DNA of 64,000 nt from Rhodosorus marinus CCMP1338 (lineage: Eukaryota; Plantae; Rhodophyta): positions 62,001 through 126,000 of the forward strand of contig JAMWBK010000007.1 of assembly GCA_029953675.1 (NCBI GenBank), given 5' to 3'. Of the stretch, positions 5,114 through 43,144 are shown in pieces (position 1 is the first letter of the stretch; each line of letters begins with the position of its first letter). A program made the position numbers and the translations under genes. The notes under the pieces are model-generated. The model ran no database searches. It was given only the letters and a program-made list of their open reading frames with translations, and was not told the origin of the DNA.

Positions 5114-5189
5114 GGAACTAAGAACTAGGGAGGGAAGAGTGCAAACCCAGGCGCCGATGGCGCGCCTCGGCAAGCATGCTGCTAGAATA
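5114..5189 (-). mobile_element. 3' end of an older family A copy, split by A2 (continues at 9967-9984)
   Basis: Reverse complement of A 3' end CTAGCAGCATGCTTGCCGAGG...CTTAGTTCC. The adjoining sequence AGAATATCGCCACAGGGC resumes at 9967. Confidence 0.85.
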
Positions 5190-9966: not shown

Positions 9967-10139
9967 AGAATATCGCCACAGGGCGGCACACAATGCTGCT
10001 TTACTGGCTTTACTAGCTGCTTTACTAGCATAGGCCCTGCTGGCGGTGGTCTTCAATGATTGTATTTATTCGGAGAAAGTGAGGAAACGAAGAAGGACAC
10101 ATTTCCTATCATGAGTGAATGCGTGATTCGGGGCTGAGA

Positions 10140-17072: not shown

Positions 17073-17127
17073 CGAACAGCATCCGCATGCTTCTGATCAT
17101 CTCAGCTCAGTTCAACGCCAGACCAAC

Positions 17128-20100
17128 GTAACCGTAAGCTTTACTGGGCAGCTGCCTACTGCAGCGCAACACTACGTCTAATCCTATCTAGGGAGAAACT
17201 TACTGGAACCCCGCTAGCGGGGTCTCATGCTACGTTCAAAAGAAAAAACAGGCACCAGCGGATTCTCCAACTGGTCCACGCGCAAAGCGCCTAGTGCTAT
17301 CTCTGCGTTACCTCGCCATAGTTGCCGGTTTATCTGCGATCTCAGGTCTCTCAGCTCCTCACTCCTCTGCAGTAAGTGTTTGCAGCTGTCGCGGAGGAAC
17401 TCTTGTGCCATTTGCCCCGTACGCCCAAACGTCTCTATCGCTATCGGGATGAACTTGTCATCCGGTTTCTCCATCACCATCGCTTCCTTGTAGTGAGCGA
17501 TTTTCCACTTCTCCGCAGCTCTCGCCGCGTATCCGCTATCATCTTGGCTCCGCCGCAAATATTTTCCCTGTAATGGTGACACCACGGTCACATCCAGCGC
17601 ATACCTTTGTTCGGTCCTCGGATGCCTGGCAACGATATCAGGTCGCAGTCCGTAGTTCTCGAAGTACCCCTCAGGTTCTTGCTCTACGTCCATGAAGTTC
17701 CATCGCCTCAGCCACCGTGCCAGCTCTCTGCAGATTTCGTCGTGCCTACGTTGCCACAGTCCAGTTGATGTTGGGCAGTGATGAAACCGTTGTACCCCAG
17801 TCCTTCCGTGTTTACTCCGGCAACTAGTGCACTTCTCGGTGGTCCGCAATCCCGTAATTGGCAGCCCCAGCAGTTGTCGAACGTTTACCTGCATCTCAAC
17901 CGCACTCAATTTTTTCGGTGTCAGCGTTAGTATTTCACGCAGCCAGACTCCCGACCCGGATCCCGCGGCGGACCGTATTCGAGCTCGGTTTTCAGGGGAG
18001 ATTCGTGGGGTTGATGACCAACCTTTGGAATGCACAATGGTGTGCCTCTCGAGAGAGGGTTTGTTGTATTGAACCATTATTCCAAGCTGCAGTCTCGCCC
18101 GGTGCGCTTCGAAGAGATGTTTCTCGCGGTTGTTGCAGGGTAGTCAGTGCCAAGATCCGCGGCGGGGTTTCTGGTCCGAGCCTCCGTTGTATTGCTCGCG
18201 ACGATGCACAGATCTGATCCGCCAGCTGTGCAGTCGACCAGCGTTGCTCCGTCGGCTCGTATGTGTCTGGTGAGCGTTCTGCCGAAACCTCCCGCTCTAG
18301 TTCAGTCAGGTATGGCCATTCATCTTCATTGTTCCGGAAGGTGTTTCTCCATGACAAGTAAAACGCGATGGGTTGGACGCGCTTTCGAGTAGCGAAACCC
18401 AACCCCCCCCCCCAGCGGCAGGGCAGAGCGATTTGGTCCGAGATCAGCTCTGCGTACTCGTCGTCCTCTACAGCTGCCGTAGCGAGGCCTCCGAATAGAA
18501 TTTCCAGATGATATCTGGTCATCACATCGGCCTCGCGTGCCAGAGTTCTTCCAAACTCGTATGCGAGGCATCGTAGAACATAATCTAGCCGCGCTTCCGC
18601 ACAGAACCTGAAGAGGGCAATTTGCGTCGTAAGCTCCGGTTGTGGGAGCTTGGCAATTTCCTCAAAGAGTTTCTCATGCTTATTTTGCAGCCCCCGGCAC
18701 TCCTGTTCGATATATTCTCGGCTGCCTATCGGTATCGAGTGGATGGTGACTCCGTCTCTGGTCACTTGGACTCCAGGAATCTCATGATTGACCACTCGCG
18801 TGGTAGTCAGTGTTCGCCCGTACACAGTGCACTTGCCGAGTTGCAGGCGTGCTCAAAGAGAGGGGAGCACAGTTTTTGCCCATGCCAGGGGTGCCTTCAA
18901 GGCTTGTAGCGGCCCGACAATCGTGATATCGTCGTGGATAGCAACAATCGTTTCGTTGGGGAACTTGGCTCGCAACGCTCTTAGAAAGGGCGCAACGCTC
19001 TTGGAAAGGGCGCCAGGGATAGTCCGTGCAGCACCGGCCCCAGTGGATCTCCCTGTTGGACTCCTGTAGCTCCTTGGAGGTCAGACGAGAGGTGTCGGTT
19101 TCGCTCTGTCCAGGGGCAGATCGCCAGCCACAGAGCGTCGGTGAGTCCGCGTTGTCGCTTCCATAGCCAAGTCTATACACTGGTGCAAGCTCCGGGAAGT
19201 GCTCGTCCACCAGTTTCTTGGCAAGGCGTCGGTCGATGCGATTAAAGGCATTCTTCAGGTCTAGCCGAAGGACCACCGAATCGGGTTCACATGACAAATG
19301 GGCCTGGATCGCGTGAAGTGAGCGTTCGCACCCGCCACTTACTCCAATACCCAGTTGTAAGGGCACCAGGAGCTCACGCACCCTGTCCATAACCGCGTGA
19401 AGAGTCCATGGCGTTGCTACCTTGCGCAAAACTTCTGGTACTCCGATAGGGCGAACTCCGGGATGTTCCGGCGGCACTGAACCCTTGTAAGGCTTCGCGA
19501 ACGGCAGGAGTCGACTGCTGCGAAGGGCGCGGGTCAGAGCCGTGGAAAATTTCTCTGGAGCGGTCGCCAGTTGTCGCAATACACGAATCAACGCCACTGC
19601 CTCTGTTGAGTTTCACCTTGGAGGTGTTCCGCTCCGAGACCGCTAGGGCCTGAGCTCTTGCCTTGAGGAAGACGTGCCACGATCGACATGAGGCCCTCGT
19701 CGGCCGCTTTTCTTGAATCCCACCGCCGCTTAAGTGTTTCGGTATTCAGAGCGAGCAAAGATTCCAGGGCTTGTGCAATCTCGTCTGGTAAGTCACCTCC
19801 CGCCGGGTCGGGAAAGAGCGCTTGAGGTTGTCTCCACGTAGCCGCGGTAAAAGGTGCCATATCGGTGGCCTGTAGGCTCCGAGCTGCATCTGAAAGGCGG
19901 CCAAGGTGTGCTAGTTTCAACGCTCGCTTGTGGCGCCCGAGATGTTGGCATCGAACCGCTTTAGCTCCTTGTGGTGCGGTAGTATGCGACAGCATAGACG
20001 CCTTGTCCTCTACAGCGCTCCAGACCGTAGAGAATTCTCCTTCAAGCACGTGCGATACCTGAATGCCAACATCAAGTGCAGAGTGTCCAAGGACAAGGCC

Positions 20101-21490: not shown

Positions 21491-22796
21491 ATCATGGACG
21501 TCATAACTTCCTGGCAGTCAACCGTTACGTAACCACACTCTGATCCAGCTCCGGCTCCAGCTGGGGACCGAATTCTGGCCCGGTCTTCAGCCAAATTTGC
21601 CCGTGGGATACCAGTTTTTGGAAAGCTGCATGGTGTGCCTCTCTGGAGAGGGTTTGTTGAATGGAACCATGTTTCCACGCTGGGGGATCGGCTTCTTCTG
21701 CGCCTGGGGCGGTTTCGGTTTTCTGCCCCAGGGTGGCCAGGTTCTTGATACGCTCGGGGGCATCTGGGCGCAGTCTGCGTTGCGTTGCTTGTGCAGAAGC
21801 GCGGATTTGGTCAGGAAGCTGGGCCGGTGACCTTTGAATTATCCTCTGTTTGTGGGTGTCTGCATGCACTTCCGAAGATGATTGCTCTTGTACCTCGGTG
21901 AGGTATGGCCATTCCCCGTGACTACCTTTGAAAGCTTAACACCAAGCCGAGTAGAAGGCAATGGGCTGGATCCGTTGTCTCGTAGCGAATCCCAGTCCTC
22001 CCCATCGACAGGGGAGTGGGATCTGGTCTAGTGTAGGGTTTTCGTAGTCAGGGCCCTCTATGGCCGTAAGTGTGAGGCCTCCAAATAGCGTATCTAGGTG
22101 ATAGCGCGTCAGGGCGTCCGCCTCCCGTGCAAGTGTTCTTCCAAAGGGGTAGGCGAGGCAGCGTAGAAAGTAGTCCACGCGGGGCTCAGAACAATACCGG
22201 AAGAGGGCCAGTTTCGTAGTCAGTTCCTCAGGGAACAGGTGAACTATCTCCTTAAATGGTTTCTCGTGGTTGTTTTGTAGCCGGCGGCACTCGCTTTGGA
22301 TGTAAGCGCGTGTTCCCATCGGAATGGAATGGATGGTAACTCCGTCTCGCGTCGCCGTGACTCAAGGCATGTCGCGGCTGAGCAGTCGGGGCGTGGTCAA
22401 CGTGATGCCGTAGAAGGTGCACTTGGCAAGCTGCAGTCGGGCTCCGAGTGAGGGAAGTGGAGTCTGACCCCAGTGTATTGAATCTTTCAGTAGTTGTAGC
22501 GGCCCTACGATGGTGATTTCATCGTGAATCGCCACCATGGCCAAAACAGGGGCTTTGTTGTGCAATGCTTCCAAGAAGAGCACCAGGGAGAGCGCATGTA
22601 GGATCGCTCCCAGGTCATCTCCTTGTTGAACTCCCGTTGTGGCCAGAAGCGTCAAGCGATGGGTGTCGTCTTGGTCTGGAACGTGGTTATCACGCAATCT
22701 GAAGAGTGTAGGAGCATCCGTGCTGTCATTTCCGTAGCCAAGCCGGTACACTGCTTCCAGCTCGGGGAAATGGTGGTCCAGTATTAACTCCAGCAT
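21490..22796 (-). mobile_element. Diverged, internally deleted family C fragment C3
   Basis: Encodes TTGVQQGDDLGAILHAL, VAIHDEITIVGP, LPCRWGGLGFAT and GSIQQTLSREAHH, homologous to C1 but clearly diverged. Confidence 0.85.
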
Positions 22797-22977
22797 AGAG
22801 CTGACGCAACTTTTCGTTCAGAGATCTCGTAAAGAACAAGACAGTGGACGTGCACCATCGTTCGACAAAAGAGATGGTAGCAGATTTTCTGACGAAACCC
22901 GCTACGAGAGGAATCCATCATTATGCGGCACCAAATGTCAAGTGGGAGATGCTGAAATTAATGGTTTGGGGGGGTTA

Positions 22978-25439
22978 GATTCGTGTATTGCGACAACTGG
23001 CGACCGCTCCGGAGAAATTTTCCCCGGCTCTGACCACGCCCTTCGCAGCAGTCGACTCCTGCCGTTCGCGAAGCCCAACAAGGGTTCAGTGCCGCCGGAA
23101 CATCCCGGAGTTCGCCCTATCGGAGTACCAGAAGTTTTGCGCAAGGTAGCAACGCCATGGACTCTTCACGCGGTTATGGACAGGGTGCGTGAGCTCCTGG
23201 TGCCCTTACAACTGGGTATTGGAGTAAGTGGCGGGTGCGAACGCTCACTTCACGCGATCCAGGCCCATTTGTCATGTGAACCCGATTCGGTGGTCCTTCG
23301 GCTAGACCTGAAGAATGCCTTTAATCGCATCGACCGACGCCTTGCCAAGAAACTGGTGGACGAGCACTTCCCGGAGCTTGCACCAGTGTATAGACTTGGC
23401 TATGGAAGCGACAACGCGGACTCACCGACGCTCTGTGGCTGGCGATCTGCCCCTGGACAGAGCGAAACCGACACCTCTCGTCTGACCTCCAAGGAGCTAC
23501 AGGAGTCCAACAGGGAGATCCACTGGGGCCGGTGCTGCACGGACTATCCCTGGCGCCCTTTCCAAGAGCGTTGCGCCCTTTCTAAGAGCGTTGCGAGCCA
23601 AGTTCCCCAACGAAACGATTGTTGCTATCCACGACGATATCACGATTGTCGGGCCGCTACAAGCCTTGAAGGCACCCCTGGCATGGGCAAAAACTGTGCT
23701 CCCCTCTCTTTGAGCACGCCTGCAACTCGGCAAGTGCACTGTGTACGGGCGAACACTGACTACCACGCGAGTGGTCAATCATGAGATTCCTGGAGTCCAA
23801 GTGACCAGAGACGGAGTCACCATCCACTCGATACCGATAGGCAGCCGAGAATATATCGAACAGGAGTGCCGGGGGCTGCAAAATAAGCATGAGAAACTCT
23901 TTGAGGAAATTGCCAAGCTCCCACAACCGGAGCTTACGACGCAAATTGCCCTCTTCAGGTTCTGTGCGGAAGCGCGGCTAGATTATGTTCTACGATGCCT
24001 CGCATACGAGTTTGGAAGAACTCTGGCACGCGAGGCCGATGTGATGACCAGATATCATCTGGAAATTCTATTCGGAGGCCTCGCTACGGCAGCTGTAGAG
24101 GACGACGAGTACGCAGAGCTGATCTCGGACCAAATCGCTCTGCCCTGCCGCTGGGGGGGGGGGTTGGGTTTCGCTACTCGAAAGCGCGTCCAACCCATCG
24201 CGTTTTACTTGTCATGGAGAAACACCTTCCGGAACAATGAAGATGAATGGCCATACCTGACTGAACTAGAGCGGGAGGTTTCGGCAGAACGCTCACCAGA
24301 CACATACGAGCCGACGGAGCAACGCTGGTCGACTGCACAGCTGGCGGATCAGATCTGTGCATCGTCGCGAGCAATACAACGGAGGCTCGGACCAGAAACC
24401 CCGCCGCGGATCTTGGCACTGACTACCCTGCAACAACCGCGAGAAACATCTCTTCGAAGCGCACCGGGCGAGACTGCAGCTTGGAATAATGGTTCAATAC
24501 AACAAACCCTCTCTCGAGAGGCACACCATTGTGCATTCCAAAGGTTGGTCATCAACCCCACGAATCTCCCCTGAAAACCGAGCTCGAATACGGTCCGCCG
24601 CGGGATCCGGGTCGGGAGTCTGGCTGCGTGAAATACTAACGCTGACACCGAAAAAATTGAGTGCGGTTGAGATGCAGGTAAACGTTCGACAACTGCTGGG
24701 GCTGCCAATTACGGGATTGCGGACCACCGAGAAGTGCACTAGTTGCCGGAGTAAACACGGAAGGACTGGGGTACAACGGTTTCATCACTGCCCAACATCA
24801 ACTGGACTGTGGCAACGTAGGCACGACGAAATCTGCAGAGAGCTGGCACGGTGGCTGAGGCGATGGAACTTCATGGACGTAGAGCAAGAACCTGAGGGGT
24901 ACTTCGAGAACTACGGACTGCGACCTGATATCGTTGCCAGGCATCCGAGGACCGAACAAAGGTATGCGCTGGATGTGACCGTGGTGTCACCATTACAGGG
25001 AAAATATTTGCGGCGGAGCCAAGATGATAGCGGATACGCGGCGAGAGCTGCGGAGAAGTGGAAAATCGCTCACTACAAGGAAGCGATGGTGATGGAGAAA
25101 CCGGATGACAAGTTCATCCCGATAGCGATAGAGACGTTTGGGCGTACGGGGCAAATGGCACAAGAGTTCCTCCGCGACAGCTGCAAACACTTACTGCAGA
25201 GGAGTGAGGAGCTGAGAGACCTGAGATCGCAGATAAACCGGCAACTATGGCGAGGTAACGCAGAGATAGCACTAGGCGCTTTGCGCGTTGGACCAGTTGG
25301 AGAATCCGCTGGTGCCTGTTTTTTCTTTTGAACGTAGCATGAGACCCCGCTAGCGGGGTTCCAGTAAGTTTCTCCCTAGATAGGATTAGACGTAGTGTTG
25401 CGCTGCAGTAGGCAGCTGCCCAGTAAAGCTTACGGTTAC
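22978..25439 (+). mobile_element. Family C copy C2, 5'-truncated, near-identical inverted twin of the C1 3' half
   Basis: ORF translations 23741..24574 and 17992..18825 are identical. It shares the same 3' terminus as C1. Confidence 0.92.
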
Positions 25440-27176: not shown

Positions 27177-27369
27177 CCCGCTTGAAGCGTCTTTTTCGTT
27201 GAAAACCAAGTCAGTCAACATCTCAAATGATTGACCAAGGAGTCTCAGTCCATATCAGAGCAGTGGTCATTGAGATTACACCACCTCACCACCTGCCGGG
27301 CAAACGCCCGGATGCTAGTCTCGCATGCTAATCCGAGCGTTAGACCTTTCCATCCGAATGTAAGCGTGG

Positions 27370-28310
27370 CTTTCCGCCGTTTTCATGGTCGAGAATTTTG
27401 ACTACCACTGCTGAGATGAGCTCCTCAGTGTTTTGGTTCTGTCCGCCGTTTTCACGGTCCAGAATTTCGACTACCACCGGAAATGAGCTCAGATTTTTTG
27501 GCTGACAAACATTTAACAGTAGAAAAAAAAGGAAATATTTTAGGGTATTCGAAGGAGATCCTCGTCATTCATTGGTCGATAATATCGACTACCATTGGAG
27601 AACGAACGAATGGTTTAATCGGAGGCTGAAAAAAAAACCCCGAGGGGAAAAAAATTGGAGAAGAGCTCAGTTTGTTTTTCACGGATTCATCCGTGAAACA
27701 GAACTGCAACTACCACTGCCCGTTTCCCACATGAATGCCGCTTTGATGTAATCGTTGTTTACCCGCTTAAGTTTCCAGCTGTGGCGCATGAATGCCGCTT
27801 TGATGTTGGAGGCGCGAGTACTTCGCCGCGCTTAGTCTTTTTTTCCCCTCGGGGTTTTTTTTTTTCAGCCTCCGATTAAACCATTCGTTCGATGTTGGAG
27901 GCGCGAGTACTTCGCCGCGCTTAGTCTTTTTTTCCCCTGTTTTTTTTTTTTTTTCAGCCTCCGATTAAACCGTCGAAATTCTCCACCAGCGTATGACGAG
28001 GGTGTTCTTCGAGAATCTTATAAACGGATCATCAATGGCTAAAGAAAAACCGATGTGGGAAACGAACGAATGGTTTAACGAATGGTTTATTCGTTCGTTT
28101 CCCACATCGGTTTTTCTTTAGCCATTGATGATCCGTTTATAAGATTCTCGAAGAACACCCTCGTCATACGCTGGTGGAGAATTTCGACTACCACTGGAGA
28201 AGAGCATAGTTTTTCTTCACGGATTCATCATAGGGGTCGGCTGCCACTGCCCGTTCCCACAACTGTTTTAAGTTAGCCATTGATGATGACGTCATCAGTG
28301 AATCAAAAGC
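27370..28310. repeat. Imperfect tandem repeat containing GACTACCAC(T)GGAGAAGAGC, carrying stacked family B 3' ends and a 100-bp perfect inverted repeat
   Basis: GACTACCA motif at about 27400, 27468, 27587 and 28186, and again at 29550. CCACTGCCCGTT(T)CCCACA...TTAGCCATTGATGAT occurs twice. Inverted arms are 27972-28071 and 28089-28188. Confidence 0.8.
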
Positions 28311-28745: not shown

Positions 28746-29873
28746 GTGGGATTGGGCACCGGAGTGGAGGGGGGGGGGGGTTGGGTGAAGGGCGGCCTCC
28801 ATATCGAGTTTTAGACCAGATCTATTTGATGGATTTATGGGTCTATAGCTCGATTAGGGTACTGTTCAGGTCTAAACGAATCTTTCCCACGCTCGAAACC
28901 CTTCCCCCGTCTCCCCCCCCTTCCCTCTACCTCACTTAGTACTCCCAGATGTCATAGTAGCTTGTACTAGTCCACCCATTGGTCCCCAGGCGTGCCATGT
29001 AAAAAAATACCATATTTCTAAATATTGCACAAACAGAATCTGATTGGCTTAAGTTGAGGACAGCGTGTCGACAAATTTGACCCTTTCGATATTAGTATCG
29101 CATACTGCTGTGTACTATATCCGAATGTATCGAGATCAAATCAGCTTATTCGGATCAGACAGGTTGACACTCTGTCCAAGACTATTTGGACGTTTGTGAA
29201 GAAAGTCAGCTGATCTGGCGAGGAAGGAGAGTTATCGTTTTTGTTCCTTTCGATGTTAGTTGCAGTTCCGCGAACGGAGGAGCTTGATGCGAGGCCAGAC
29301 GGGGGGGGTACAGCTTGCTTCCTCTCCCGCCCTGCTCGCCCCCACCCGCTCGCGCTCTTAGGATATGGGCGCAGCGTACTATGTAACCCCACAGCAGCGC
29401 CGAACGCGCGCTGCTTTGATGCTTTGGAGGCGCGCGACCGCTGGAAATGAGCTCAGTTTTTTTGGGCTCACAAACAATAATCAATAAAAAAAAGGAAATA
29501 TTTTAAGGTATTCGAAGGAGATCCTCGTCATTCATTGGTCGATAGCATCGACTACCACTCTAGAACGAACGAATGGTTTAATCGGAGGCTGAAAGAAAAA
29601 ACCCGGAGGGGAAAACCCCCACACGAGAGTTTTCGGTTTCGTGAGGGTGTATGGTGCTGGCTTTTGGTGGTTTTGAGTCGCAATTGTGTTCTTCGGTGGG
29701 AGGCGCTTCTTTCTGCAGCCTTTCCCCCGCATCTTCTAGTGGTGTGGTGCGTGCTGGGGGTTGCTAGCGCCCCTTGGAGGTCGTGGTGGTTTTCTTTGGT
29801 TGCAAACGTTGGGAACAAGTTCTCTTTTTGGGGGTTTCGTGGGGGAATCGGTTTTTCACACCTTCCAATCGTT

Positions 29874-31172
29874 ATGGTTGGGGTTTCCCCACCCATTCCG
29901 GAGGACGGAGCCGTTCTCTCAGCGCGTGTGGAGCTCAGCGTGGGCGGGTTTAGTACCGCGGCCACCCTCACGGACTGCGCTGACGAGTTGGCCCATGGGA
30001 TCTGCTCGAAACTGACGAGTCTTCTTGTGACTGCTTCCCAGGAACACCGCCTGCCCCTGCTGATCGCCTATTTGGAGCGCTTCTCCGCCTCCGCGCCTGC
30101 CCCATACCCCCCGGTGCCCGTCCCCGCGGATCCGCACGGTACAGCGGGGCCTGCCTCCACCCGACCCGAGCGCTCCGCTCCGGTCATTCCTGATTCCGAC
30201 TGGCCTACCCCTATTCAAGGACAGACGCCTCCTGGGCCCGCGTCGGGCCCGAATCCTGCTCCCTCCAGTGCCCCACGTGCGACCTATTCGCAGGTCCTGC
30301 GCAGGGGCTCTTCTGAACAACGCACGACGGCAATGGTGCGTATGATGCCACAACACATCCCTATTGACTCTTCTCGCCAACTATCTCCGTTCCACTTTGT
30401 TTGGATGACGAACGTGCGTCCCCAGACCCCCTCTCGTGGTCGGGGCCGCGCGCCCGTCCACTACCGCGATTTTCGCGACACCATGGCTTCCTCCCTTGGG
30501 GTCGCCCCATCTGAATTCCTATATGTGGACTTCACGGGCCCTCATGCCTGTTTTCTTGTTACTGACTCGGCTTACCAGTTCCTTCAATCCCTTGTAACCA
30601 CCCCCGCGCCCCAGCGCTCTGCTCTGGCCAACATGATACTGACTCGTCCTCATGTCTCTTTGTTTGTCGAGTTCGATCGTTTTGACGCCGGCTGGGTTCC
30701 TCCGTCGGCCTTGCAAAACCTGGATGCCTCGCAGGCTTCGGTTGTCGCGCTACACACTCATGCGGCGCGGCTCTCGCGCATACAGGCGAGCCTCTTCGCG
30801 CGTTTTCCTCCTCGCGGGGTCCTCCGCACCGCGCTAGAGGCCTTCCTCTCCACTGAGGCCACCCTGCTGGAAGCCCACCCTGCGTTTGACCTTCTGCCGC
30901 CGACTCTTGAGCACCCTTCCTCCCCTCGCCCTGTCTCCGAGGCTCGTGACACCGACATGGCAGGAGCACCATCGGCCTCTCCGAATCCGCTGGCTCTGGA
31001 CACCCTCAGTCAAGACTCCGCTGCTGAAAACCCTGTGTCTACTTTCTTCAGGTCTTTTAGTTCCTTCGTGCGCCCCCCACGTAAGCGTCGTGCGGCTCCT
31101 GAGCCTCCCTCCGAGGCACCTCCTCCGGATATTCGATCTGCCTTCCCGACTGAGGGGAGGCCCGATGTCTGA
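29874..31172 (+). CDS. Family B ORF1, putative RNA-binding (RRM-like) protein
   Basis: MVGVSP start matches family A ORF1 starts. Has a Pro-rich linker, the conserved FVWMTNVRP..RDFRDTMASSLG..EFLYVDFTG.HACFLV domain, and a basic RKRR motif near the C-terminus. Confidence 0.8.
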   Translation: MVGVSPPIPEDGAVLSARVELSVGGFSTAATLTDCADELAHGICSKLTSLLVTASQEHRLPLLIAYLERFSASAPAPYPPVPVPADPHGTAGPASTRPERSAPVIPDSDWPTPIQGQTPPGPASGPNPAPSSAPRATYSQVLRRGSSEQRTTAMVRMMPQHIPIDSSRQLSPFHFVWMTNVRPQTPSRGRGRAPVHYRDFRDTMASSLGVAPSEFLYVDFTGPHACFLVTDSAYQFLQSLVTTPAPQRSALANMILTRPHVSLFVEFDRFDAGWVPPSALQNLDASQASVVALHTHAARLSRIQASLFARFPPRGVLRTALEAFLSTEATLLEAHPAFDLLPPTLEHPSSPRPVSEARDTDMAGAPSASPNPLALDTLSQDSAAENPVSTFFRSFSSFVRPPRKRRAAPEPPSEAPPPDIRSAFPTEGRPDV

Positions 31173-34100
31173 GTCTTCCTCCTCCGCGTGCGTGTCGTCC
31201 CGGTTACCCCTGTTTACCAGTGACCGCTCAGCCTGGCATGAGCGTGTTCTCTCGTGGTTATCTCACCTTGTCGCCTCCTACCCGGACGGTTCCCTTCCCC
31301 TTTGTCGTCAGAGCACGGCCGTACGGCTCCCTCGTCGACTTCATAAGCCCCTAGGATTGGTGTTGGATTTTCTCTGGCAGCAGGTCGCCGCGAACCCTCA
31401 CTGCTCTCTTCGCTGGGAACTCTTGTTCTTTTTTCCCCGCCTCGTGCTCACCTCCTCTACCGTCCCCCTCAACCCACATCCTCGCCGGGTCCACCCTCGC
31501 CGAAAACTGCAAATGTTCCTTTCCGGCGACTTTGAGGACCTCGAACGTCTTTATTTCGCTTCTCTCTCTTCCTTTTCTCCTAGTGCTCCCTCAGCTTTTA
31601 GGTCTTCTCGACAGAATCGGGCGCGTCACGCGGTGGCAGGCGGTGATCTGCGGCGGGCAGCCGGGATCCTCCAGCAGCGGCAACCTGTGGTTCCATACTC
31701 CGATGATCTTTCTTCACCGCTCCGTTTGCTCTTTCCCTCGGAAGGCTCCCCTTGGGACTCCTCGTTTGAATCAGTGTTGGAAGAGTACCGCGCCGCGCCA
31801 CATCCCAGTGCGCGGTTAGTGGTCAATCTGGAGGCGGTGCGTGAGTTGGTTCATGATGCTCCGAAGGGCCGTTCCCCAGGGCCCTCGGGGCTGCGGGTGG
31901 AATATCTCCGTTTCTTAAGTGATGAAGGTTTGAAGGCGTTGGCGTGGGTGGTCGAAGCGCTTGTGAATGGTGATCCCCTGTGTGAGTGTGCGTGGTTCTT
32001 GGTCGGGCGTTCGCAGTTGTGTCTGCTTTCGAAGCCCAGCCACACGGCCTCGAGCCCTGCTATTCGCCCTATTGGCCTGGTTGAGGTGGTCCGCAAATTG
32101 GCGGCGCGATGGTTAGTGAAAATCCTGGTTCCCGAATCCCGCCGTTTCTTTGGGCACGTGCAGTTAGGCGTGGGCTATCGTGGTGGCTGTGAGTTGTTGT
32201 CTGTTTTACTCCGTTCGGAAATGGCGTACTCCCCAGATTCTGGGCTCCTCTCTGTAGATTTTACCAATGCGTTCAACCGCGTCTCTCGTCCGGCTCTCAT
32301 GCACGTGGTGCGCGAAGTCTTCCCTGTAGGCTTTCCCTTTGTTTGTAGACTTTATTCTCCGCTTGGTCGTGGGGCTACCTATGACACCCTTGGCGCTTCC
32401 TCACACACGTTTGCGGCGCGCACAGGGGTACAACAGGGTGATCCCTTGTCCCCTTTCCTACATGCCTGTGGACTACAACTCGTCTTGCTTTGTCTTCGCT
32501 CCGAATTCCCGCAGGTTCGTACGGTTGCATACCACGACGACGTGTGCCTCCTGTGCCCCCTGATACTCTAGCGCTCGCTTATGATCGTCTCCGCTCCTTG
32601 GCTTCGCGTTGACCTGGAGGTTAATCATCACAAATCGTTCTACTGGGGAGGTGTAGCTGCACAAGAGCAGCAGGTACCTGCGTCGTTCCAGGATATTTGG
32701 AGACCGGATGGTTTTGTCCACTTAGGCATCCCCTACGGGTCGCCGTCCTTCGTTGAAGGCGAGTTGCTGCAGCTCCTCGGTAAGCACAGACAGCTGGTTG
32801 CAGAGCTTCGACGGCTACCTCCGGGCTTTCTCCAGTGCTCGTTGTTGCTGTTTCGGTATTGTTGCAGTCAGCGGTTAACCTATTGGCTTCGCTCACTTCC
32901 AACTCATTGGGGCCGGTGGTTGGCCACTCGTGCGGATGCTGAAAGTTTCTGTGACCTGGGGTATTTTCTCGATGAAGAGCTGAGCGCTCTGCCGCGACCC
33001 ACCTGTGATGTTGTGCGCGCCCTGGTAGGCCTCCCATTGCGATTGGGGGGACTGGGCCTCTGCAATCGTGTTGTGGTCCAACCTGCAGCCGCAGTAGGGG
33101 CCTGGGGAACCGCACTTCCCACTTTGAGCAGCTTGGGTATCTCGAAGTTCCGCAATTTGATGGCGAGCCTCTCGCGGGGTGTCTTGCTTCCCAGCGTACC
33201 GGAAAGCGCCCAAGACTTGTTTCTGGAGCTCCAAACCGCCCTGAATTCCTGTACTAGTCTCCCCGAAACCGTTCAACCCCGTCTTCCTGACTGGCGAGCT
33301 GTATTTGACCGCTCTCGAGGCTCCGCCCCGGGGATTCGTCCTGCGCCTGAACCTGTTCTAGGGGAGATTGACCCAGTGGTTGCCGCAGAAGAAGAAGTTC
33401 CAGTTGATCCTCCTGATGATCCCCAGCGCGCTGGGAGCCGAGCTCAAGCACGCACGGATGCGCTGCAAAATATCCTTTCTTGGGACTTGCACCGTGCTGC
33501 ATATGGCCGACTCCTCGCGCAGATGGTCTCATCTTCTCGCGCTCGCGCCCGCCTACGTAGTCTTGGAGGGGTTCTTAGCTCTCAGTGGCTCATGACCGTA
33601 CCAGCCTTTCCGCCACTCACACTGTCGGATTTCGAAGTGCGTACTTCACTGCGCTTATACCTCGGCTTACATCAGCCCCCTTGGCCGTACGAGATGGGTT
33701 CGTCGTGCCCTCTCTGCTCTCAGACTGAAGACAACGCAGATTTTGGCGCCCACCTGCTCGCTAGTTGCCCGGCGGTGAAAGGTGCTCGAACCCGCCGCCA
33801 CACACGGATCTTGAACCTGTTATACCGGGAACTTCGGCCTATAGTCCGGCAAGCCGGTCTGGAAATCGAACGTGAGAAACCTTTACCCGTCGCGGACTTT
33901 CAAAATGATGAACGCCGTGTAGCCGACCTGGTGATCACCTGTGACGACAGCCGCCGTACCACATACGTTGATCTTGCTGTTCCTAACCCTCAAGCTAGTC
34001 GTTATCTCCCGGCTGCGGGGGAGCGCCGTGGATCTGCCGCCGCCAGCATGAGACGCCGCAAAGAGATCAAATACGCGGGGGCTTTGTCTTCCCCTGGTGT

Positions 34101-34305
34101 TCGTGCTTCGGCACTAGCACATCGCTTGGTACCCCTGATCATTGAGTGCTTTGGGTTCATGGACTCTGTTGGTTCTCGCTGGCTTCGGGAGTTGTTCCGC
34201 GAACGCCCTGACCGTCTTCAATCGTTGTTTACCCGCTTAAGTTTCCTGCTGTGGCGCATGAATGCCGCTTTGATGTTGGAGGCGCGAGTACTTCGCCGCG
34301 CTTAG
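31165..34305 (+). CDS. Family B ORF2: reverse transcriptase + CCHC knuckle + restriction-like endonuclease (one short frameshifted patch)
   Basis: ATG at 31165 (MSESSS). Motifs include IRPIGLVE, VDFTNAFNRVSR, TGVQQGDPLSP, AYHDD, LPLRLGGLG, CPLC..H..C, RTRRH, VADLVI, YVDLAVPNP and LIIECFG. The in-frame TAG at 32569-32571 lies in a compensated frameshift patch. Confidence 0.9.
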
Positions 34306-34360
34306 TCTTTTTTTCCCCTCGGGGTTTTTTTTTTTCAGCCTCCGATTAAACCATTCGTTC

Positions 34361-34488
34361 GAGGGGAAAAAAAGACTAAGTGCGGCGAAGAACTCGGGCC
34401 TCCAACATCAAAGCGGCATTCATGCGCCACAGCAGGAAACTTAAGCGGGTAAACAACGATTGAAGACGGTCAGGGCGTTCGCGGAACA
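34361..34488 (-). mobile_element. Remainder of an older family B copy whose tail is at 29563-29615
   Basis: Reverse complement of the B 3' region with substitutions relative to the full-length copy (GACTAAGTGCGGCGAAGAACTCGGGCC versus GACTAAGCGCGGCGAAGTACTCGCGCC). Confidence 0.85.
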
Positions 34489-37400
34489 GACTGGACTGGA
34501 CTTTGCTAGCAAACTGGACTTTACTAGCATAGCCTGAAGCGCTACGCAAGGCGTGAAGATGAACTAATAACTAGGGAGGGAAGCATGCAACCCCAGGCGC
34601 CGATGGCGCGCCTCGGAAAGCATGTCGCTGGAATATCGCCAAAGGGAGACACTTAAACGCCTCAAGAGCGCCAAATATGCAGTAGGATGCTCAGCAAAAC
34701 ATTTCCGCAACCACTCTAAACCCGACTTATCGACGTGACCAAAGCTTTCCACAATGAATGGCTGGAACCGGTGAGAGCGACCCTCAGCGCAAGGCAGACT
34801 GGCCATGCTCTCAGCATACCGTCGTTCCTTAACTCTTCGAAGGGCTGAAGCCGCGGCCCCCCAGCGGCGGGCGGCTGCGGTGAGGTGGGCGCTGGCCACG
34901 GGGCAGGTAATCGCAAGGTCCACATATGTTGAGCGTCTGGCAGCAGCGTCGGAGACGAGGAGATCGGCGATACAACGGGGCGGTGCAGAGTCCGAGATGG
35001 ATCTGGGCAGTTCCGACTCAACCTCAACCGTATGCCCTATCCGAGTCAAAAATTCGCTGAGGATGTACTTGAGGCGAGTGTGACGCCTCGTACGGAGACC
35101 TCGCAACAGTCCGCAGGAACCCAGGAAGTGGTAGCCACAAGCGTCAATCCGGCTCTCACATCCCTGACAAAAAGACGGCCGATTAGAGTGCCACGGAGCC
35201 TGTGGCAAACCGAGATAGATCCGTGCGGCAGAACGGAACTGGAAAGCATCGAGACGATGACTCAATGACGACGGTAGAGTGGTTAACCACAAGTGCGAGG
35301 TGGCCTCCCATGCCGCGGAGACGAGCGGCAGTGGTAGGCGGCGTGAGAGGAGAATTGAGCATGACTGTGTGAGCGGCACTGTGTTGGCCCCAGGTGAGGC
35401 TATGTTGAATCACATCAGTGCGGGAGCTCCACAATCGGCTCAAACCCGGGTAGTCTGCAACAGGGGACCCGGGGCTAGCCTCTCCGTCATCGGCAAGAAC
35501 TCGGTCGAGGGGACAATCCTCAATCGCTTCAGCTCGTCCCCATAACAGCTCCCTCCAGGAACGAAAGCGGGACCGATTTGCGTCCGGCACGGCGTTGCAC
35601 CTCCTGAACGCGTGTTGAAGACCATCATAAATTGTCAAAAGCGGGGGCGGCAGGGTCACTGGATCCTCGTTGGTCAAAGCTCGAGCCAAGAGGCAGGCAC
35701 TTCGCATCTGGAAGGTCACCAACGCTCGCAGCGCGGTAGCCCAGCAGGCAACCGCCGCTGGCGAGCATACAAGCCCACGGTCTGCGACGCCGAATCCCCC
35801 TAATCGCAACGGTAGAGCGATCTGTGCACGAATTAAGTCCCTGTCGGGAGCAGCTTCAAGATCGAGGGGCTCATCCAAGAGCGTTCCCCAGTGTTGCAGG
35901 GTCATTTCGTCGGCTTTAGCCGCGATCCACGAGCCCCACGCTGGAGGCAGGCTGCGCAACCAGTAGTTGAGTCTGGGACCGGCACAAAAGCGGGAAAGCA
36001 AGCAGGCCGATTGCAGCATGCTGTCGGGTAGGTGCTCAATGGCGTCGGTGAGTTGCTTGTGCCGTGCCAAAACTCGCTCGCAGGATGCTTGGACAAAGTT
36101 GTCAGTCCCCAATCCGACGCCGTGGTGTTCGAACCCTTCACGTTCGCTGATTAGTCGCAGAGTGGGTGGCAGAGAGTTCAGCGACACGTCCCTCGGGGAG
36201 AGAAAGCGACATTTTTCTGTTTCCACAGTCAAACCGACGCGACGTGCAATCGCTTCGATCGCGGTCAGTCCCCTAGCCAGGGTGTCAGGGGTGCCCAGCA
36301 ATGTTACGTCATCGTGGTACGCGCAGATTCGAAGATCCGAGACCTCAGTCGAAAGACGTAAAAGTACGAGCTGTAGGGCACAGGCATGAAGAAGAGGTCC
36401 GCAAGGGTCGCCTTGTTGGACGCCAGTATGTGCTTGAAAAACAGTGCCCTCCGTTGTCAAGTAGGGGAGGCTCTCCCCTCCGTAAATACCCGATAGAAAC
36501 GGCCACGCCTCCGGAAACACACGTCGGAGCACCTCTAGCGCATGCGTCCGCGACACGCTGTTGAATGCGTTCCGGAAATCAACCACCAAGACTCCCCACT
36601 CCGGCCTACTGGCGCGTTCTAGCTCGATCCCATGGGTGATCAGTTCACAACCCCCAGAGAATCCCACCCCGACTTGCAAGGGCGCCATAAAAGCTGTGAC
36701 GCGCTGGCGAAGGCGCTGGCATAGCCACCTCCCGGCTAACTTCCGTAGGCTCTCCACCATCCCGATCGGCCGGAGACGCGGGTGGGCCGGCTGGTGGTCA
36801 GGTTTCGTGAGCAAGCAAAGCTGTGCCTGCCGGAGATGTTCCCATGGCGCACCCGATACGCCCTGGAACAACTTGTTAAGGATCCTCAGAAGCGCGCTCT
36901 TGCCAGGCTGGCTCAGGGCCTGCAATAGCTCTGTTCTTAGTCCGGAGGGTCCGGGACAGCGTCCCCGACGCGAGGTACGAAGCAAATCCTCCAGGTCAGA
37001 CTCACTGAGCGTCAGATCGATGCGAAACCTGGCCAACTCCGGACGGTCCAAGAATACCTCGAATTCAGGGGACAAATCCACGTCGGACTCAGGGAACAAA
37101 GACGACACCGTCTGGGCGAGACTATCATCGTAGGGGAGGACAGGCGCCTGGCCCTCCAAAACCCGCGCCGCTCGACTTAAATCGCCCACTGCTACCAATT
37201 TCTGTACTCGAGCCGGCACGGGCGACACTGTGCCATGCCGAGTCCGACGGGCGGATGGTGCTGACGACGCCAAATAGCTGCGCTGTAGTACTTCGAAGTC
37301 TCCCTTCAAGAACAGGGCCAGTCGGTCTCGTACTCGCCATCTGCGCTCCGATGTGTGAATGGGGGCCAGAATCAGGCGCGGCATGACCCCCAGAAAAACC

Positions 37401-37692
37401 CAAATGACTGTGTCCCGAATGTTGCGAGCCAGGCTCGTGAAGATGAAATCGAGAATGGTTCCAGCTACTAGAAGGTCTCCACGAGGAAGGACGACTGGGG
37501 GAATGCCCCCACGGAGGGGAAGCGAGCCTCCTTCCAAAGAAATCCACCGCCGGAGCCAACTCCGAAAACGCGTACGCCAAATGCCCCAGTCTCCGCCCTC
37601 CTTCAGGACATAAGACTGTAGATCCATAGGCTGCGACCTCGCAGCCGTGCCTGGAGCGCTAGTCGTGCTTCTCCCCCTTAGACCCGGGTCAC
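34489..37692 (-). mobile_element. Family A copy A3, 5'-truncated in ORF1; ORF2 intact except for one frameshift
   Basis: ORF2 runs from MDLQSY (37627) through the complete RT (TGVQQGDPCGP, AYHDD). A 2-nt loss at about 35300 shifts it to the 34564..35379 frame with the knuckle and RLE. Confidence 0.93.
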
Positions 37693-38235
37693 CGTCTGGA
37701 TGCCTTCCAGTTTCGCTCCGCCGCACGGATTTACCTGGGTTTCCCACAAGCTCCTAGGCACTCTAATCGGCCGTCTTTCTGTCAGGGATGTGAGAGTCGG
37801 ATCGATTCTTGTGGTTACCACTTCTTAGGTTCACGCGGACTGTTAAGAGGTCTTTGTACGAGGCGTCACACTCGCTTCAAGTAGATTCTCAGCGAATGTT
37901 TGACTCGGGTAGGGCATACCGTTGAGGTGGAATCGGAACTACAAAGATCGGTCTCGGATAGGGCACCGCCCCGCTGTACCGCAGATCTCCTCGTCTCCGA
38001 TGCTGCCGCCAGACGCTCAGCATATGTTGACCTCGCGATTACATGCCCTGTGGCAAGCGCCCATCTCAAGGCTGATGCCCGCCGCCGGGAGCAGCTGCTT
38101 CGGCTCTTCGCCGCGTGAAGGAACGACGGTATGCTGAGAGTATGGCCACGCTGGGTTTGCACGCTTCCCTATCTAGTTCTTAGTTCCCTTCACGGTTTGC
38201 GTAGCGTTTTAGGCTATGCTAATAAAGCCTAAAGC
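37690..38235 (+). mobile_element. Family A 3' fragment (A5) joined in inverted orientation to the 5' break of A3
   Basis: Encodes HRLDAFQFRSAAR, GHTVEVESEL and YVDLAITCP, and ends CTATGCTAATAAAGCCTAAAGC. Confidence 0.88.
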
Positions 38236-38496: not shown

Positions 38497-40751
38497 TCAC
38501 TGGACCCAACTGGATGCGGTAGCGGCAACGTTTCTGACGATGGATGGGGGATCGCTGTACAGCATCGATCCTAAAGGTTCCGCAATTCCGAGTCTGTATA
38601 GGGTTCGTGGTATGAACAGGAGCAAGTTCCCTAGGATCGGATGGACGGTCTCAGTGAAGGTGGACGCGAGGACGTCGTCTACAACAATAGTCTCTTCCAG
38701 CGTATGCGGATTGTAGAGCCCTTGTCGAGTGACCCGTGTGAGTTTCTTCACCACCACAATCTCTCCGTCACCCAGTCGTACCCGATCTCCCTCAACAACC
38801 AGGCGTGCCGGCTTCACTCCGCCGTCTACAATGAGGTAGTGACTTGGAGATAGCTCAATCGTGGCCTTCCCGACTTCCACCTTGATAAACTCAGTCACGA
38901 TCTCCGCGTCTCTATGACCAAAGGCATAGACATCACTGTATGATCCGTTAGACACCAGTACGCGGTCCCCAGCCTTCAACTCGCTCATCGTCTTGTTGGA
39001 ATTGTCCTCAAGTTCAACCCTAGCGGCGCCTGGGAAGCATGCGGCGACCACGGGAATAGGGGGTGGATTGGAGACGTCTGGTGATTCACTCGGAGACGGT
39101 TCGGGTATTTCTGTGAAGAAGATCGGTTCGGTGGGCGTCGGAGTTCCCTCCGGAGCCGCCGTTGCCGTCTCAGCTGCCTCTGGCGTGCTTGTCGCGGTTT
39201 CTTCTGGGGCGCTTGTCGCCGTCTCCTCCGGCGCGCTCGTCGCCGTCTCTTCTGGTACGCTCGTCACCGTGACTTCTGGTACGCTCGTCACCGTGACTTC
39301 TGGTACGCTCGTCGCCGTCTCTTCTGGTATGCTCGTCGCCGTCTCCTCCGGTACGCTTGTTGCCGTCACCTCTGGTACGCTTGTTGCCGTCACCTCTGGT
39401 ACGCTCGTCGCCGTCTCCACTGGTACGCTCGTCGCCGTCTCCACTGGTACGCTCGTAGCTGTCTCCCCTGGTGCGCTCGTCGCTGTCTCCTCTGGTACCC
39501 TTGTCGCCGTCTCCTCTGGTACCCTTGTCGCCGTCTCCTCTGGTACCCTTGTTGGTGTCCCCTCTGGTACCCTTGTTGGTGTCCCCTCTGCAGGTTCTGT
39601 TGACGTGGAATCTGTCGAAGGAAGCGCGGATGGCGTTGGCAGAGTTGTTGGTGGAGTTGCTGGCGGAGGTGTTGGCGGAGGTGTTGGCGGAGGTGTTGGC
39701 AGAGGTGTTGGCGGAGATGTTGGCGGAGATGTTGGCGGAGGTGTTGGTGGTGCTGGCGACGGCGTTGGTGGGGGCCGCGATGGTGTTGGTGGTGCTGGCG
39801 ATGGTGTCGGTTGAAGCGTATCTGATACCTCGGGAATCAAACTCTGAAGCCAAATTCTATTGGTTTCGTGGTACATGTTCGCGTACACATCCTCTCCACT
39901 TCCATCACATCCTAGTTAGCCAACAACGAGGTACGTAAGCCACAGACTTGTGCGACCGGTGCTCAGCGAATATACTTACCAATGCCTCCAGTAAACTTTC
40001 CAAAGCTTAAGATTCCAATAGCTCGGTCATCTCGGGGCGTCTCTCCCTCCATGATCAGCGGACTGCCGCTGTCCCCATAACAAGTGACGGTGTTCAGCTC
40101 AGTGTTCATCGACGACGAGCAGATCAGCGTGGATGGGTCCTGAACCGGTATGAACCGAGGAAGTTCCCGCAGGAACTGACAGTTTTCCCATGAAATCGAC
40201 TGGGAATCGTAGCGGCGTAGCTTCCCGTCAACCTCCAGATGCTGCAAGCCAGTGTTGTTGTCGACGCCAAAGCCTATGGAGGTGGTTTGACCGCCGTATT
40301 CTGGTTCATCGTAACTGATTCGCAGGGCTGGAACGTCAAAGATCTGCTCGAAGAGTCTGAGAACCGCCAGATCAGATGCTACGTTCTCGTCGCGATTGAA
40401 TCCCGGATGCACGTGGACTGCGTGGACAGGCGAACAGAACCCCGGGTTGACGTTCTTGACCACTGTCCCAGCGCACGCTTGGACCTCATCGAGAGAAGTA
40501 AAATCCGCACAGTGAGCGACGGTCAAGACCGTGTCGGGACCCACGAGAACACCTGAGCATTTTACAAATCCGGATTCTGATATGTAAACCATGTACGGAT
40601 ACCTCGAGGCATCAGTCACCACGTCCCCGTCAATGATTCTCTGAGCCGTTTTGGTCCGCACTCGCTCTACAGGAAGCCCATAAACATGAGTAACAGTTAG
40701 TAAAATATACAGCAAAGCAGCCGCACCGCTGCTCGTCAAATAATGCCTCAT
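38497..40751 (-). CDS. Secreted S1 serine protease + Pro/Thr/Glu mucin-like stalk + Hedgehog-type Hint domain, two exons (40751-39980, 39911-38497), 728 aa
   Basis: Signal peptide MRHYLT..., activation site QR|IIDG, and triad motifs TVAHC, SDLAVLRL, GDSGSP. A 68-nt GTAAGT...CTAG intron joins in frame to GCDGSGEDVYANM. Hint motifs are ACFPG, ELKAGDRV, LSPSHYL and GLYNPHTLEETIVVDDVLAS. Confidence 0.85.
39180..39590 (-). repeat. Coding minisatellite: 17 units of 24 bp (consensus PEETATSV)
   Basis: Counted in the translation from AEGTPTRV to PEETATST; preceded by (CCTCCGCCAACA)-type PTPP repeats. Confidence 0.92.
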
Positions 40752-41177: not shown

Positions 41178-41671
41178 TACGTGAGAAACCTTTACCCGTC
41201 GCGGACTTTCAAAATGATGAACGCCGTGTAGCCGACCTGGTGATAACCTGTGACGACAGCCGCCGTACCACATACGTTGATCTTGCTGTTCCCAACCCTC
41301 AAGCTAGTCGTTATCTCCCGGCTGCGGGGGAGCGCCGTGGATCTGCCGCCGCCAGCATGAGACGCCGCAAAGAGATCAAATACGCGGGGGCTTTGTCTTC
41401 CCCTGGTGTTCGTGCTTCGGCACTAGCACATCGCTTGGTACCCCTGATCATTGAGTGCTTTGGGTTCATGGACTCTGTTGGTTCTCGCTGGCTTCGGGAG
41501 TTGTTCCGCGAACGCCCTGACCGTCTTCAATCGTTGTTTACCCGCTTAAGTTTCCTGCTGTGGCGCATGAATGCCGCTTTGATGTTGGAGGCGCGAGTAC
41601 TTCGCCGCGCTTAGTCTTTTTTTCCCCTCGGGGTTTTTTTTTTTTTCAGCCTCCGATTAAACCATTCATTC
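41178..41671 (+). mobile_element. 5'-truncated young family B copy
   Basis: Near-identical to the B 3' end. Flanked by ATATCAGGAGA at 41167-41177 and 41672-41682; tail is CCATTCATTC. Confidence 0.93.
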
Positions 41672-42077: not shown

Positions 42078-43080
42078 AGTGTAATAGACGCAGTGGTTGC
42101 CGCAGAAGAAGAAGTTCCAGTTGATCCTCCTGATGATTCCCAGCGCGCTGGGAGCCGAGCTCAAGCACGCACGGATGCGCTGCAAAATATCCTTTCTTGG
42201 GACTTGCACCGTGCTGCATATGGCCGACTCCTCGCGCAGATGGTCTCATCTTCTCGCGCTCGCGCCCGCCTACGTAGTCTTGGAGGGGTTCTTAGCTCTC
42301 AGTGGCTCATGACCGTACCAGCCTTTCCGCCACTCACACTGTCGGATTTCGAAGTGCGTACTTCACTGCGCTTATACCTCGGCTTACATCAGCCCCCTTG
42401 GCCGTACGAGATGGGTTCGTCGTGCCCTCTCTGCTCTCAGACTGAAGACAACGCAGATTTTGGCGCCCACCTGCTCGCTAGTTGCCCGGCGGTGAAAGGT
42501 GCTCGAACCCGCCGCCACACACGGATCTTGAACCTGTTATACCGGGAACTTCGGCCTATAGTCCGGCAAGCCGGTCTGGAAATCGAACGTGAGAAACCTT
42601 TACCCGTCGCGGACTTTCAAAATGATGAACGCCGTGTAGCCGACCTGGTGATCACCTGTGACGACAGCCGCCGTACCACATACGTTGATCTTGCTGTTCC
42701 TAACCCTCAAGCTAGTCGTTATCTCCCGGCTGCGGGGGAGCGCCGTGGATCTGCCGCCGCCAGCATGAGACGCCGCAAAGAGATCAAATACGCGGGGGCT
42801 TTGTCTTCCCCTGGTGTTCGTGCTTCGGCACTAGCACATCGCTTGGTACCCCTGATCATTGAGTGCTTTGGGTTCATGGACTCTGTTGGTTCTCGCTGGC
42901 TTCGGGAGTTGTTCCGCGAACGCCCTGACCGTCTTCAATCGTTGTTTACCCGCTTAAGTTTCCTGCTGTGGCGCATGAATGCCGCTTTGATGTTGGAGGC
43001 GCGAGTACTTCGCCGCGCTTAGTTTTTTTTCCCCTCGGGGTTTTTTTTTTCAGCCTCCGATTAAACCATTCATTCATTCA
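42078..43080 (+). mobile_element. 5'-truncated young family B copy
   Basis: Near-identical to about 33375-34360. Flanked by TATGTAATAGGCAC at 42064-42077 and 43081-43094; tail is CCATTCATTCATTCA. Confidence 0.93.
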
Positions 43081-43144
43081 TATGTAATAGGCACTAGCTG
43101 GTCTGGTCAGATTCCTAATTAGGAATATATTGCGTGAATTTATA

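Follow-up and report, generated by a model that had tools for sequence, protein, structure and literature searches.

Clusters in which long interspersed elements (LINEs) of one family are nested in each other are already known in green algae. Zepp of Chlorella and Coccomyxa, an L1-type element, and ZeppL of Chlamydomonas lie nested in or adjacent to one another in discrete GC-rich islands of gene-dense genomes. In Coccomyxa, Zepp forms strictly one cluster per chromosome, for which a centromeric role was proposed (PMC3446292). Here, we analyzed a locus of comparable organization in the nuclear genome of the red alga Rhodosorus marinus CCMP1338 (GCA_029953675.1), a long-read assembly of 31.2 Mb in 13 large contigs with 15% repeats (PMC10250338). 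The stretch under study, hereafter the window, comprises the 64 kb at positions 62001-126000 of contig JAMWBK010000007.1, and all copy comparisons and site counts were made inside it. Positions 1-44,300 of the window form a LINE island composed of related retrotransposons, with a few unique stretches and one host gene between them, and ordinary genes follow to the right of the island from 45 kb on. The resident elements differ from Zepp in being of the restriction-like endonuclease (RLE) type and in belonging to at least three related families (A, B, and D). The element of central interest is a structurally full-length member of family B (29616-34360), which, judging from its flanks, has very probably inserted in antisense orientation into the 3' untranslated region (UTR) of an older, 5'-truncated copy of its own family. 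Nested insertion is ordinary in kind, and the R2-type family of a red alga that it involves is previously undescribed; a literature search for LINEs or centromeres in Rhodosorus gave nothing relevant.

The inserted element and the sequences that border it are arranged as follows:

29616-34360, plus strand: B, structurally full length, 4745 bp, recognized by its flanking duplication, open reading frames (ORFs), Pfam RVT_1 match, and R2/L1 structure matches.
29606-29615, strand not applicable: target-site duplication on the left, GAGGGGAAAA, the antisense counterpart of TTTTCCCCTC within the 3' UTR of the old B.
34361-34370, strand not applicable: target-site duplication on the right, GAGGGGAAAA, identical to the left one at 10/10 positions.
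29566-29605, minus strand: 3' terminus of the older B (last part of its 3' UTR) on the left side of the insertion, matching the B 3' end in reverse complement.
34371-34488, minus strand: 5' part of the older B (ORF2 coding end and first bases of the 3' UTR), forming a palindrome of ~128 bp with 34193-34360.

The 10-mer GAGGGGAAAA directly flanks B on both sides, and the right-hand junction reads ...CATTCGTTC followed immediately by GAGGGGAAAAAAAGAC. To the left, positions 29566-29615 match the final ~50 nt of B in reverse complement (94%), and to the right, positions 34361-34488 match B positions 34193-34317 in the same manner, with about 97% identity in the aligned part. When the flanks were joined and one copy of the 10-mer was removed, the reverse complement of the product aligned with the B 3' end across an unbroken 172 nt (about 96% identity; 5 mismatches and 2 gaps of one base), and the family's ...CTTAGTC-T7-CCCCTC... 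stretch was restored exactly, including its seven T. The duplicated 10-mer corresponds to nucleotides 3-12 after the stop codon of the resident B. A 10/10 repeat at both junctions in combination with restored colinearity is far beyond chance.

An earlier note on this DNA had placed B antisense within the 3' UTR of an older minus-strand B, and the colinear joined flanks and the duplication on both sides bear this out, with some adjustment of detail. The old tail, which the note had put at 29563-29615, is indeed present, its start most likely falling at 29566 since GAA belongs to the target TCTAGAA. The duplication, given as 10 bp, is likewise real and measures 9 or 10 bp, the G being possibly the last base of B. 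The resident copy had been called older and diverged; older it is, although its divergence from B is merely about 3-4%. As the other, young B copies are 99-99.4% identical to B, this divergence indicates that the flanking pieces are older and therefore did not arise in the same event. The cut had further been assigned to a hairpin of the 3' UTR, which did not hold: the site contains nothing more than a CCCC-TC-GGGG mini-palindrome, shuffled sequences fold about as well as the 131-nt B 3' region (z = -0.70), and a structured hairpin at the cut site was thus rejected. The complete explanation, in which the nested insertion is combined with the mechanism and the integration bias discussed below (the latter at even odds), is quite probably the best one for the locus.

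The full-length B is made up of the following parts:

29616-29873, plus strand: 5' UTR of B, 258 nt.
29874-31172, plus strand: ORF1 of B, 432 aa.
31165-34305, plus strand: ORF2 of B, with a premature TAG at 32569-32571.
32059-32556, plus strand: reverse transcriptase (RT) domain of ORF2 (Pfam RVT_1, E = 4.5e-9; Protein Data Bank (PDB) structures of R2/L1, E ~1e-9).
33391-34305, plus strand: C-terminal linker, CCHC zinc knuckle, and restriction-like endonuclease of ORF2 (R2 match, conserved residues, fold search).
34306-34360, plus strand: 3' UTR of B, 55 nt, ending ...CAGCCTCCGATTAAACCATTCGTTC.

The ATG of ORF2 overlaps the ORF1 stop codon in ATGTCTGA (31165-31172), an overlap that suggests termination-reinitiation coupling, and in this copy ORF2 is broken by the single premature TAG. 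A Pfam search with ORF1 returned no match. Compared with solved structures, ORF2 was most similar to the reverse transcriptases of R2 and of L1 ORF2 (E about 1e-9), and its CCHC stretch matched R2 (E = 0.0018). The residues C-x2-C...H...C, RH, E, D, D, and K were kept in A, B, and D as well as in three distant homologues (P0001-3), and the C-terminal motif order of B agrees with the REL-ENDO layout C-x2-C...H...C / RH / E / (R)AD / D reported for MoTeR1, SLACS, and CRE (PMC12857005). An AlphaFold model of the last 304 residues of ORF2 (pLDDT 70), searched against PDB by fold, yielded seven significant matches, all of them R2 (E 1.8e-7 to 4e-4, TM 0.50-0.61), the rest being non-significant. The Pfam search of ORF2 detected neither Exo_endo_phos nor any family other than RVT_1 at E <= 0.01, and such an absent match is not proof that an APE domain is lacking. 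Based on RVT_1, the R2 structure matches, the conserved CCHC/RH/E/D/D/K residues, the R2-only fold search, and the published motif layout, the predicted protein identifies B as an R2-type (RLE / REL-ENDO) non-long terminal repeat (LTR) retrotransposon without a detected APE domain.

In its order of an RT followed by a CCHC knuckle and a C-terminal PD-(D/E)xK-type nuclease, B resembles R2, R4, NeSL, CRE/SLACS/CZAR, HERO, GilM/GilT/Genie of Giardia, and MoTeR/FoTeR, and it shares with R2 and other RLE elements the lack of an APE domain match and the presence of 5'-truncated copies. R2 has a single ORF, whereas B has a separate ORF1 overlapping ORF2. Unlike RLE elements with a fixed target, B is flanked by unrelated duplications in each of three young copies. 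A sequence-specific target is typical of R2, R4, NeSL, and CRE, although not of every RLE member, and R2 typically leaves a small deletion at 28S, unlike the duplications of 5-13 bp seen here. When the C-terminal ORF of B was compared with 5.8 billion proteins, three relatives with 25-34% identity and no self-match were found, and the B tail had no exact match when scanned against JGI metagenome contigs; families B, A, and D are nearly orphan in this protein collection. The genome annotation calls zero genes across the transposable element stretches, and an exact look-up of a 574-aa B ORF retrieved no called gene.

Further copies, tails, and arrays related to B were located in the island:

27603-27654, minus strand: paralogous B tail of 52 nt, at the site in its repeat that corresponds to that of the old tail, with no B 5' end beside it and its own 8-bp duplication TTGGAGAA at 27595 and 27655.
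27750-27890, plus strand: young B 3' fragment, 141 bp, 99% to B, sense-nested in a 96-nt B fragment (27729-27749 and 27896-27971) with GATGT on both sides.
41178-41671, plus strand: young 5'-truncated B, 99%, in unique DNA, with an 11-bp duplication ATATCAGGAGA.
42078-43081, plus strand: young 5'-truncated B, 99.4%, in AT-rich unique DNA, with a 13-bp duplication ATGTAATAGGCAC.
27340-27716, 28100-28250, and 29436-29558: head-to-tail arrays of tails ('C' sequence).

Five B copies (4745, 1004, 494, 141, and 52 nt) share their 3' end and differ in the extent of 5' truncation, which is the pattern of a LINE, and flanking direct repeats of LTR size around B were not seen in the repeat comparison of the window. 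The duplications of these five copies measure 10, 13, 11, 5, and 8 bp, respectively, and they have no common motif (GAGGGGAAAA, ATGTAATAGGCAC, ATATCAGGAGA, GATGT, and TTGGAGAA), so a sequence-specific target is not apparent. The 52-nt tail, 2 kb upstream of the old copy, repeats the antisense tail of that copy with the same left flank (27523-27654, 92-96% identical), no B 5' end adjoins it, and an empty-site equivalent of its insertion is found at 28185-28210. The old tail and the 52-nt tail have a common 3' junction, both standing directly after the end ...CGACTACCA(C/T). The 42078-43081 copy is located 64 bp from the tails of diverged B-like minus-strand copies (43145-43266 and 43282-44269), which are arranged head to tail at 43145-44269. 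The 'C' repeat is itself a head-to-tail array, with units of 60-120 nt that consist of the last 2-3 codons and the 3' UTR of a B-related family and end in CGACTACCAC. Such tail arrays suggest repeated template jumping or insertion at resident 3' ends. Array material also forms a palindrome with arms of ~100 nt centered near 28075, and the B tails vary as (CATTC)(G/A)TTC units. Another diverged B-like family is represented by fragments at 10113-11021 (minus strand) with the tail ...CAGCCCCGAATCACGCATTCACTC; these point tail to tail toward the full-length A copy, whose 3' end is about 150 bp distant.

For the insertion of B, we propose a course that follows target-primed reverse transcription (TPRT). 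The sequence shows that a short, 5'-truncated B of ~172 nt was already resident on the minus strand when the new B entered it in the opposite orientation; the endonuclease would have nicked the sense strand of this resident copy after ...TTTTCCCCTC. On the freed 3'-OH, reverse transcription of B RNA would then have begun at the extreme 3' end of the RNA (...CCATTCGTTC), and a cut of the other strand 9-10 bp away, followed by fill-in, would have duplicated GAGGGGAAAA. In the TPRT model, a downstream second-strand cut gives rise to a target-site duplication (PMC2881922). The young truncated B copies carry the signature of this process, namely duplicated sequences of 11 and 13 bp, unrelated to each other and placed immediately at their ends, and the ~10-bp duplication at the full-length B fits these lengths and a second cut placed downstream of the first.

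The same-family nesting at this site raises the possibility that the elements favor their own kind as a target, as the earlier note had proposed under the term of a shared self-targeting behavior. Family A offers a parallel, for which the relevant copy is given here:

5190-9968, plus strand: A copy, full-length-looking with degraded frames, splitting an old minus-strand A 3'-region fragment of ~100 nt (5115-5189 and 9973-9998).

AGAATA occurs at both junctions of this copy (5184 and 9967), and the insertion is antisense to the old fragment. Self-nesting of the kind known from Zepp is represented in the island by B in B twice, A in A, and the tail arrays. Two of the four young B insertions, the full-length B and the fragment at 27750-27890, fall inside older B sequence of the same family, which amounts to 320 nt of the window as it was before these insertions (P = 1.8e-4 over the window and 4.2e-4 when the space is restricted to the island, calculated post hoc). 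The position of A2 within A1 and the end of the 42078-43081 copy 64 bp from the head-to-tail B-like tails point in the same direction. From these observations, it seems about an even chance that integration is biased toward the 3' ends of copies already resident, whether of the same or of a sister family, in either orientation. Were this bias real, it would, together with template jumping by the RT, build the LINE island at 1-44,300.

Several points weigh against the explanation as a whole. The statistic is post hoc and comes from a single 64-kb window picked for this very feature, and when all B-like sequence is taken as the target, P becomes 0.013-0.028 (0.028 with the island alone as the space). 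Two young B copies lie in unique DNA, the orientation is mixed and not consistently antisense, and inspection of six sites for a target consensus revealed none that was clear. Deletions and duplications are present in the region too. The 52-nt tail shares its 3' junction with the old copy and yet is short and has its own 8-bp duplication, which may reflect either hits at one site in two paralogous units or derivation of one locus from the other with later change. In addition, the 5' end of B at 29616 is set by the duplication alone, the window holding a single full-length B. The claim of shared self-targeting is accordingly plausible rather than proven: two of the four young B copies in old tails, A in A, and the tail arrays speak for it, and the copies in unique DNA, the mixed orientation, and the post hoc test against it. 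Microhomology between the primer and the 3' end of B RNA was likewise considered at the six sites, where a vague pyrimidine-then-purine step at the first nick was seen and is not claimed, nor is a target consensus.

The alternative that survives best accepts the nesting as real and dispenses with any preference, B having hit an old B by chance in a tolerated graveyard of transposable elements. We regard it as a serious contender, if slightly less than evenly poised. Of the 64 kb of the window, ~28 kb are repeated sequence, concentrated almost entirely in 1-44.3 kb, and a chance origin would agree with this density, with the placement of two of the four young B copies in unique DNA without a target consensus, and with the deletions and rearrangements of the island, of which the 3'-truncated A copy at 15521-17073 and the D inverted duplication are examples. 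It accounts less readily for the fact that 320 nt of older B received two of the four young insertions, with the probabilities given above, and for the full-length A in the same arrangement and the tails in head-to-tail arrays. A wider extrapolation, in our view unlikely, is that the RLE LINEs of R. marinus home to resident 3' ends in either orientation and so build one self-reinforcing island per chromosome, which would be an R2-type counterpart in red algae of the Zepp clusters for which a centromeric role in green algae was proposed. A possible guide would be read-through RNA of a nested master copy, carrying GAGGGGAAAAAAAGACUAAG... past the 3' end of the element; this extension would be able to base-pair with any B 3' UTR on its sense strand and could position the primer. 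In R2, 3' extensions derived from 28S help to position the primer.

The remaining alternatives question the nesting itself. In the first of them, the left and right old pieces would come from two older B copies joined by recombination or rearrangement, the 10-mer being homology shared by both. The tail at 27603-27654 lends this some substance, since it has the same 3' junction at a length of only 52 nt and with a duplication of its own, and the left piece may once have equaled such a 52-nt insert without a B body to its right. A join of this sort, however, needs perfect register within about 13 nt of homology, and the rebuilt 3' UTR has the exact seven T of the family and is colinear over 172 nt, which makes this origin very unlikely.

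The inverted pieces could also have been made in the same event as B, through twin priming, fold-back of the cDNA, or template switching. In L1, twin priming with 5' inversion reportedly leaves one inverted, non-overlapping 5' segment inside one duplication pair. The B locus resembles such products in that inverted LINE sequence adjoins sense LINE sequence in the setting of TPRT, but at B, a complete element stands between two halves of an older copy, and the inverted pieces lie outside the duplication and on both sides of it, overlapping in exactly the duplicated 10-mer and repeating sequence that the sense copy contains as well. Head-to-head and head-to-tail junctions are frequent in the island, and R2-type RTs jump between templates, according to the passage of PMC2881922 that refers to Bibillo and Eickbush (2004). 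The pieces are nevertheless 3-4% off B, where a copy made in the same event would be identical, and we consider this route highly improbable.

A further possibility is that the inverted segments are built into B, which would then be a LINE bearing terminal inverted repeats or a tail inverted as in Penelope-like elements. Genie 2 of Giardia lamblia, an RLE-type LINE, reportedly carries in every copy inverted repeats that reach 172 bp, and these resemble the apparent 53-bp terminal inverted repeat of B (29563-29615 versus 34308-34360). The left piece corresponds, in reverse complement, to precisely the final ~50 nt of B, and the comparison of copies comprised a single full-length B. The same inverted tail with its left flank, however, stands at 27523-27654 with no B 5' end next to it; the sequence right of B joins the left piece in one colinear B 3' end, which terminal repeats do not predict; the duplications of the truncated B copies follow the 3' end directly, with no inverted sequence; the inverted piece in family A is internal and not terminal; and the endonuclease of B is restriction-like and not GIY-YIG. 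A built-in origin is hence scarcely credible, and the inverted ends of B, unlike those of Genie 2, would represent a split resident copy. Because the tail occurs without a B 5' end and the truncated copies carry plain duplications without inverted sequence, both the 53-bp 'terminal inverted repeat' and the ~128-bp palindrome spanning 34193-34488 are best understood as by-products of insertion geometry and not as parts of the element. The remark of the earlier note that the duplication mimics terminal inverted repeats is in keeping with this, as the splitting of a resident copy by the insertion explains both inverted pieces. Finally, a palindromic long-read chimera in the assembly is barely conceivable: the source is a long-read assembly (PMC10250338) and the D inverted repeat is suspiciously perfect (2255 nt at 100%), but several positions differ between the two arms of the B palindrome, where fold-backs give identical arms and no duplication logic, and the left piece is found 4.7 kb away, in the register that an insertion would produce.

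Beyond the right end of the old B, the nested insertion borders on a member of family A:

34489-37688, minus strand: A3, a 5'-truncated family A copy whose 3' tail (GTCCA repeats) abuts the old B, with a Pfam RT match and PDB R2 matches.

Family A, including A3, shares 35-48% identity with B in ORF2, and its best structure match is also R2. The earlier note held that A3 then inserted into the same old copy. The abutment at 34488/34489 is evident, but an insertion is not, with nothing B-like beyond A3. A search for a duplication flanking the composite of old B and A3 found none, and the C repeat sequence is not resumed to the right of A3. The old B may be a 5'-truncated insert of ~172 nt that simply abuts A3, or A3 and the old B may constitute one chimeric insert, formed by a jump of the RT from a short B template to A RNA. 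End-to-end template jumping is documented for the R2 enzyme, as far as the passage of PMC2881922 citing Bibillo and Eickbush (2004) goes.

Elsewhere in the island, A2 sits within A1 (minus strand, 46 to about 5114), whose 5' end faces the A copy at 5190-9968 head to head. At 37688-38229 (plus strand), an A 3' fragment with 94% identity to A1 and an internal deletion stands head to head with the truncated 5' end of A3. The 3' tails of family A are made of copy-specific pentamers, (GCCAA)n in A2 (2166-2180) and (GTCCA)n in A3 (34489-34500), with mixed CTTTACT(G/A)G units near 10000 (9960-10035), and the tails of A and B seem to have been extended or to have slipped at integration. Family D, a third RLE-type LINE, is present as a 2.46-kb inverted duplication (17131-19590 and 22975-25437) that is 100% identical over 2255 nt, and its arms have the same 5' truncation point and enclose a 3.4-kb spacer with a D-like RT fragment (21942-22652, minus strand). 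This arrangement could be a recent inverted segmental duplication, gene conversion, or a long-read assembly fold-back. D was also considered as a third full-length element with an inverted 5' piece, a reading discarded because the two arms share one 5' truncation point (19590 and 22975) and so form an inverted duplication and not a nested insertion. As to the host sequences, a Hint-module ORF and a trypsin-like ORF at 38497-40751 (minus strand) and 39105-39811 are fused by the annotation into one 728-aa gene, which contains 24-nt and 12-nt coding tandem repeats and has LINE copies on either side. A host gene with astacin/EGF/C2 domains occupies 45497-47086, and neither Rfam at gathering thresholds nor a tRNA scan revealed an RNA gene in the window that might be a hidden target.

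The palindrome has a predictable consequence at the RNA level. The earlier note had pointed to complementary sequence at the ends of a read-through transcript, and in agreement with this, the segment 34185-34495 is predicted to fold into a hairpin of ~128 bp (-269.5 kcal/mol, z = -29.9). Mu killer in maize, a hairpin-forming inverted transposon duplication, is said to trigger silencing, and the B locus is similar to such duplications in its predicted RNA with a ~128-bp stem, formed by the ORF2 end and the 3' UTR. If homing to resident 3' ends were true, inverted pairs of this type would encode hairpin RNAs able to feed silencing.

Taken alone, the insertion of B is a routine nested insertion, and its recognition as such keeps B from being mis-annotated as a foldback transposon or as one bearing terminal inverted repeats. 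Its modest value derives from two points. The locus provides a stylonematophycean red alga with a record of R2-type LINE families (A, B, and D) that look active and have ORF1 plus ORF2. The window also hints that the 3' ends of these families draw further insertions; if this holds genome-wide, R. marinus would be a compact 31-Mb system in which to study the choice of safe sites by endonuclease-bearing LINEs without a fixed target, and it would also be suited to asking whether LINE islands mark red-algal centromeres.

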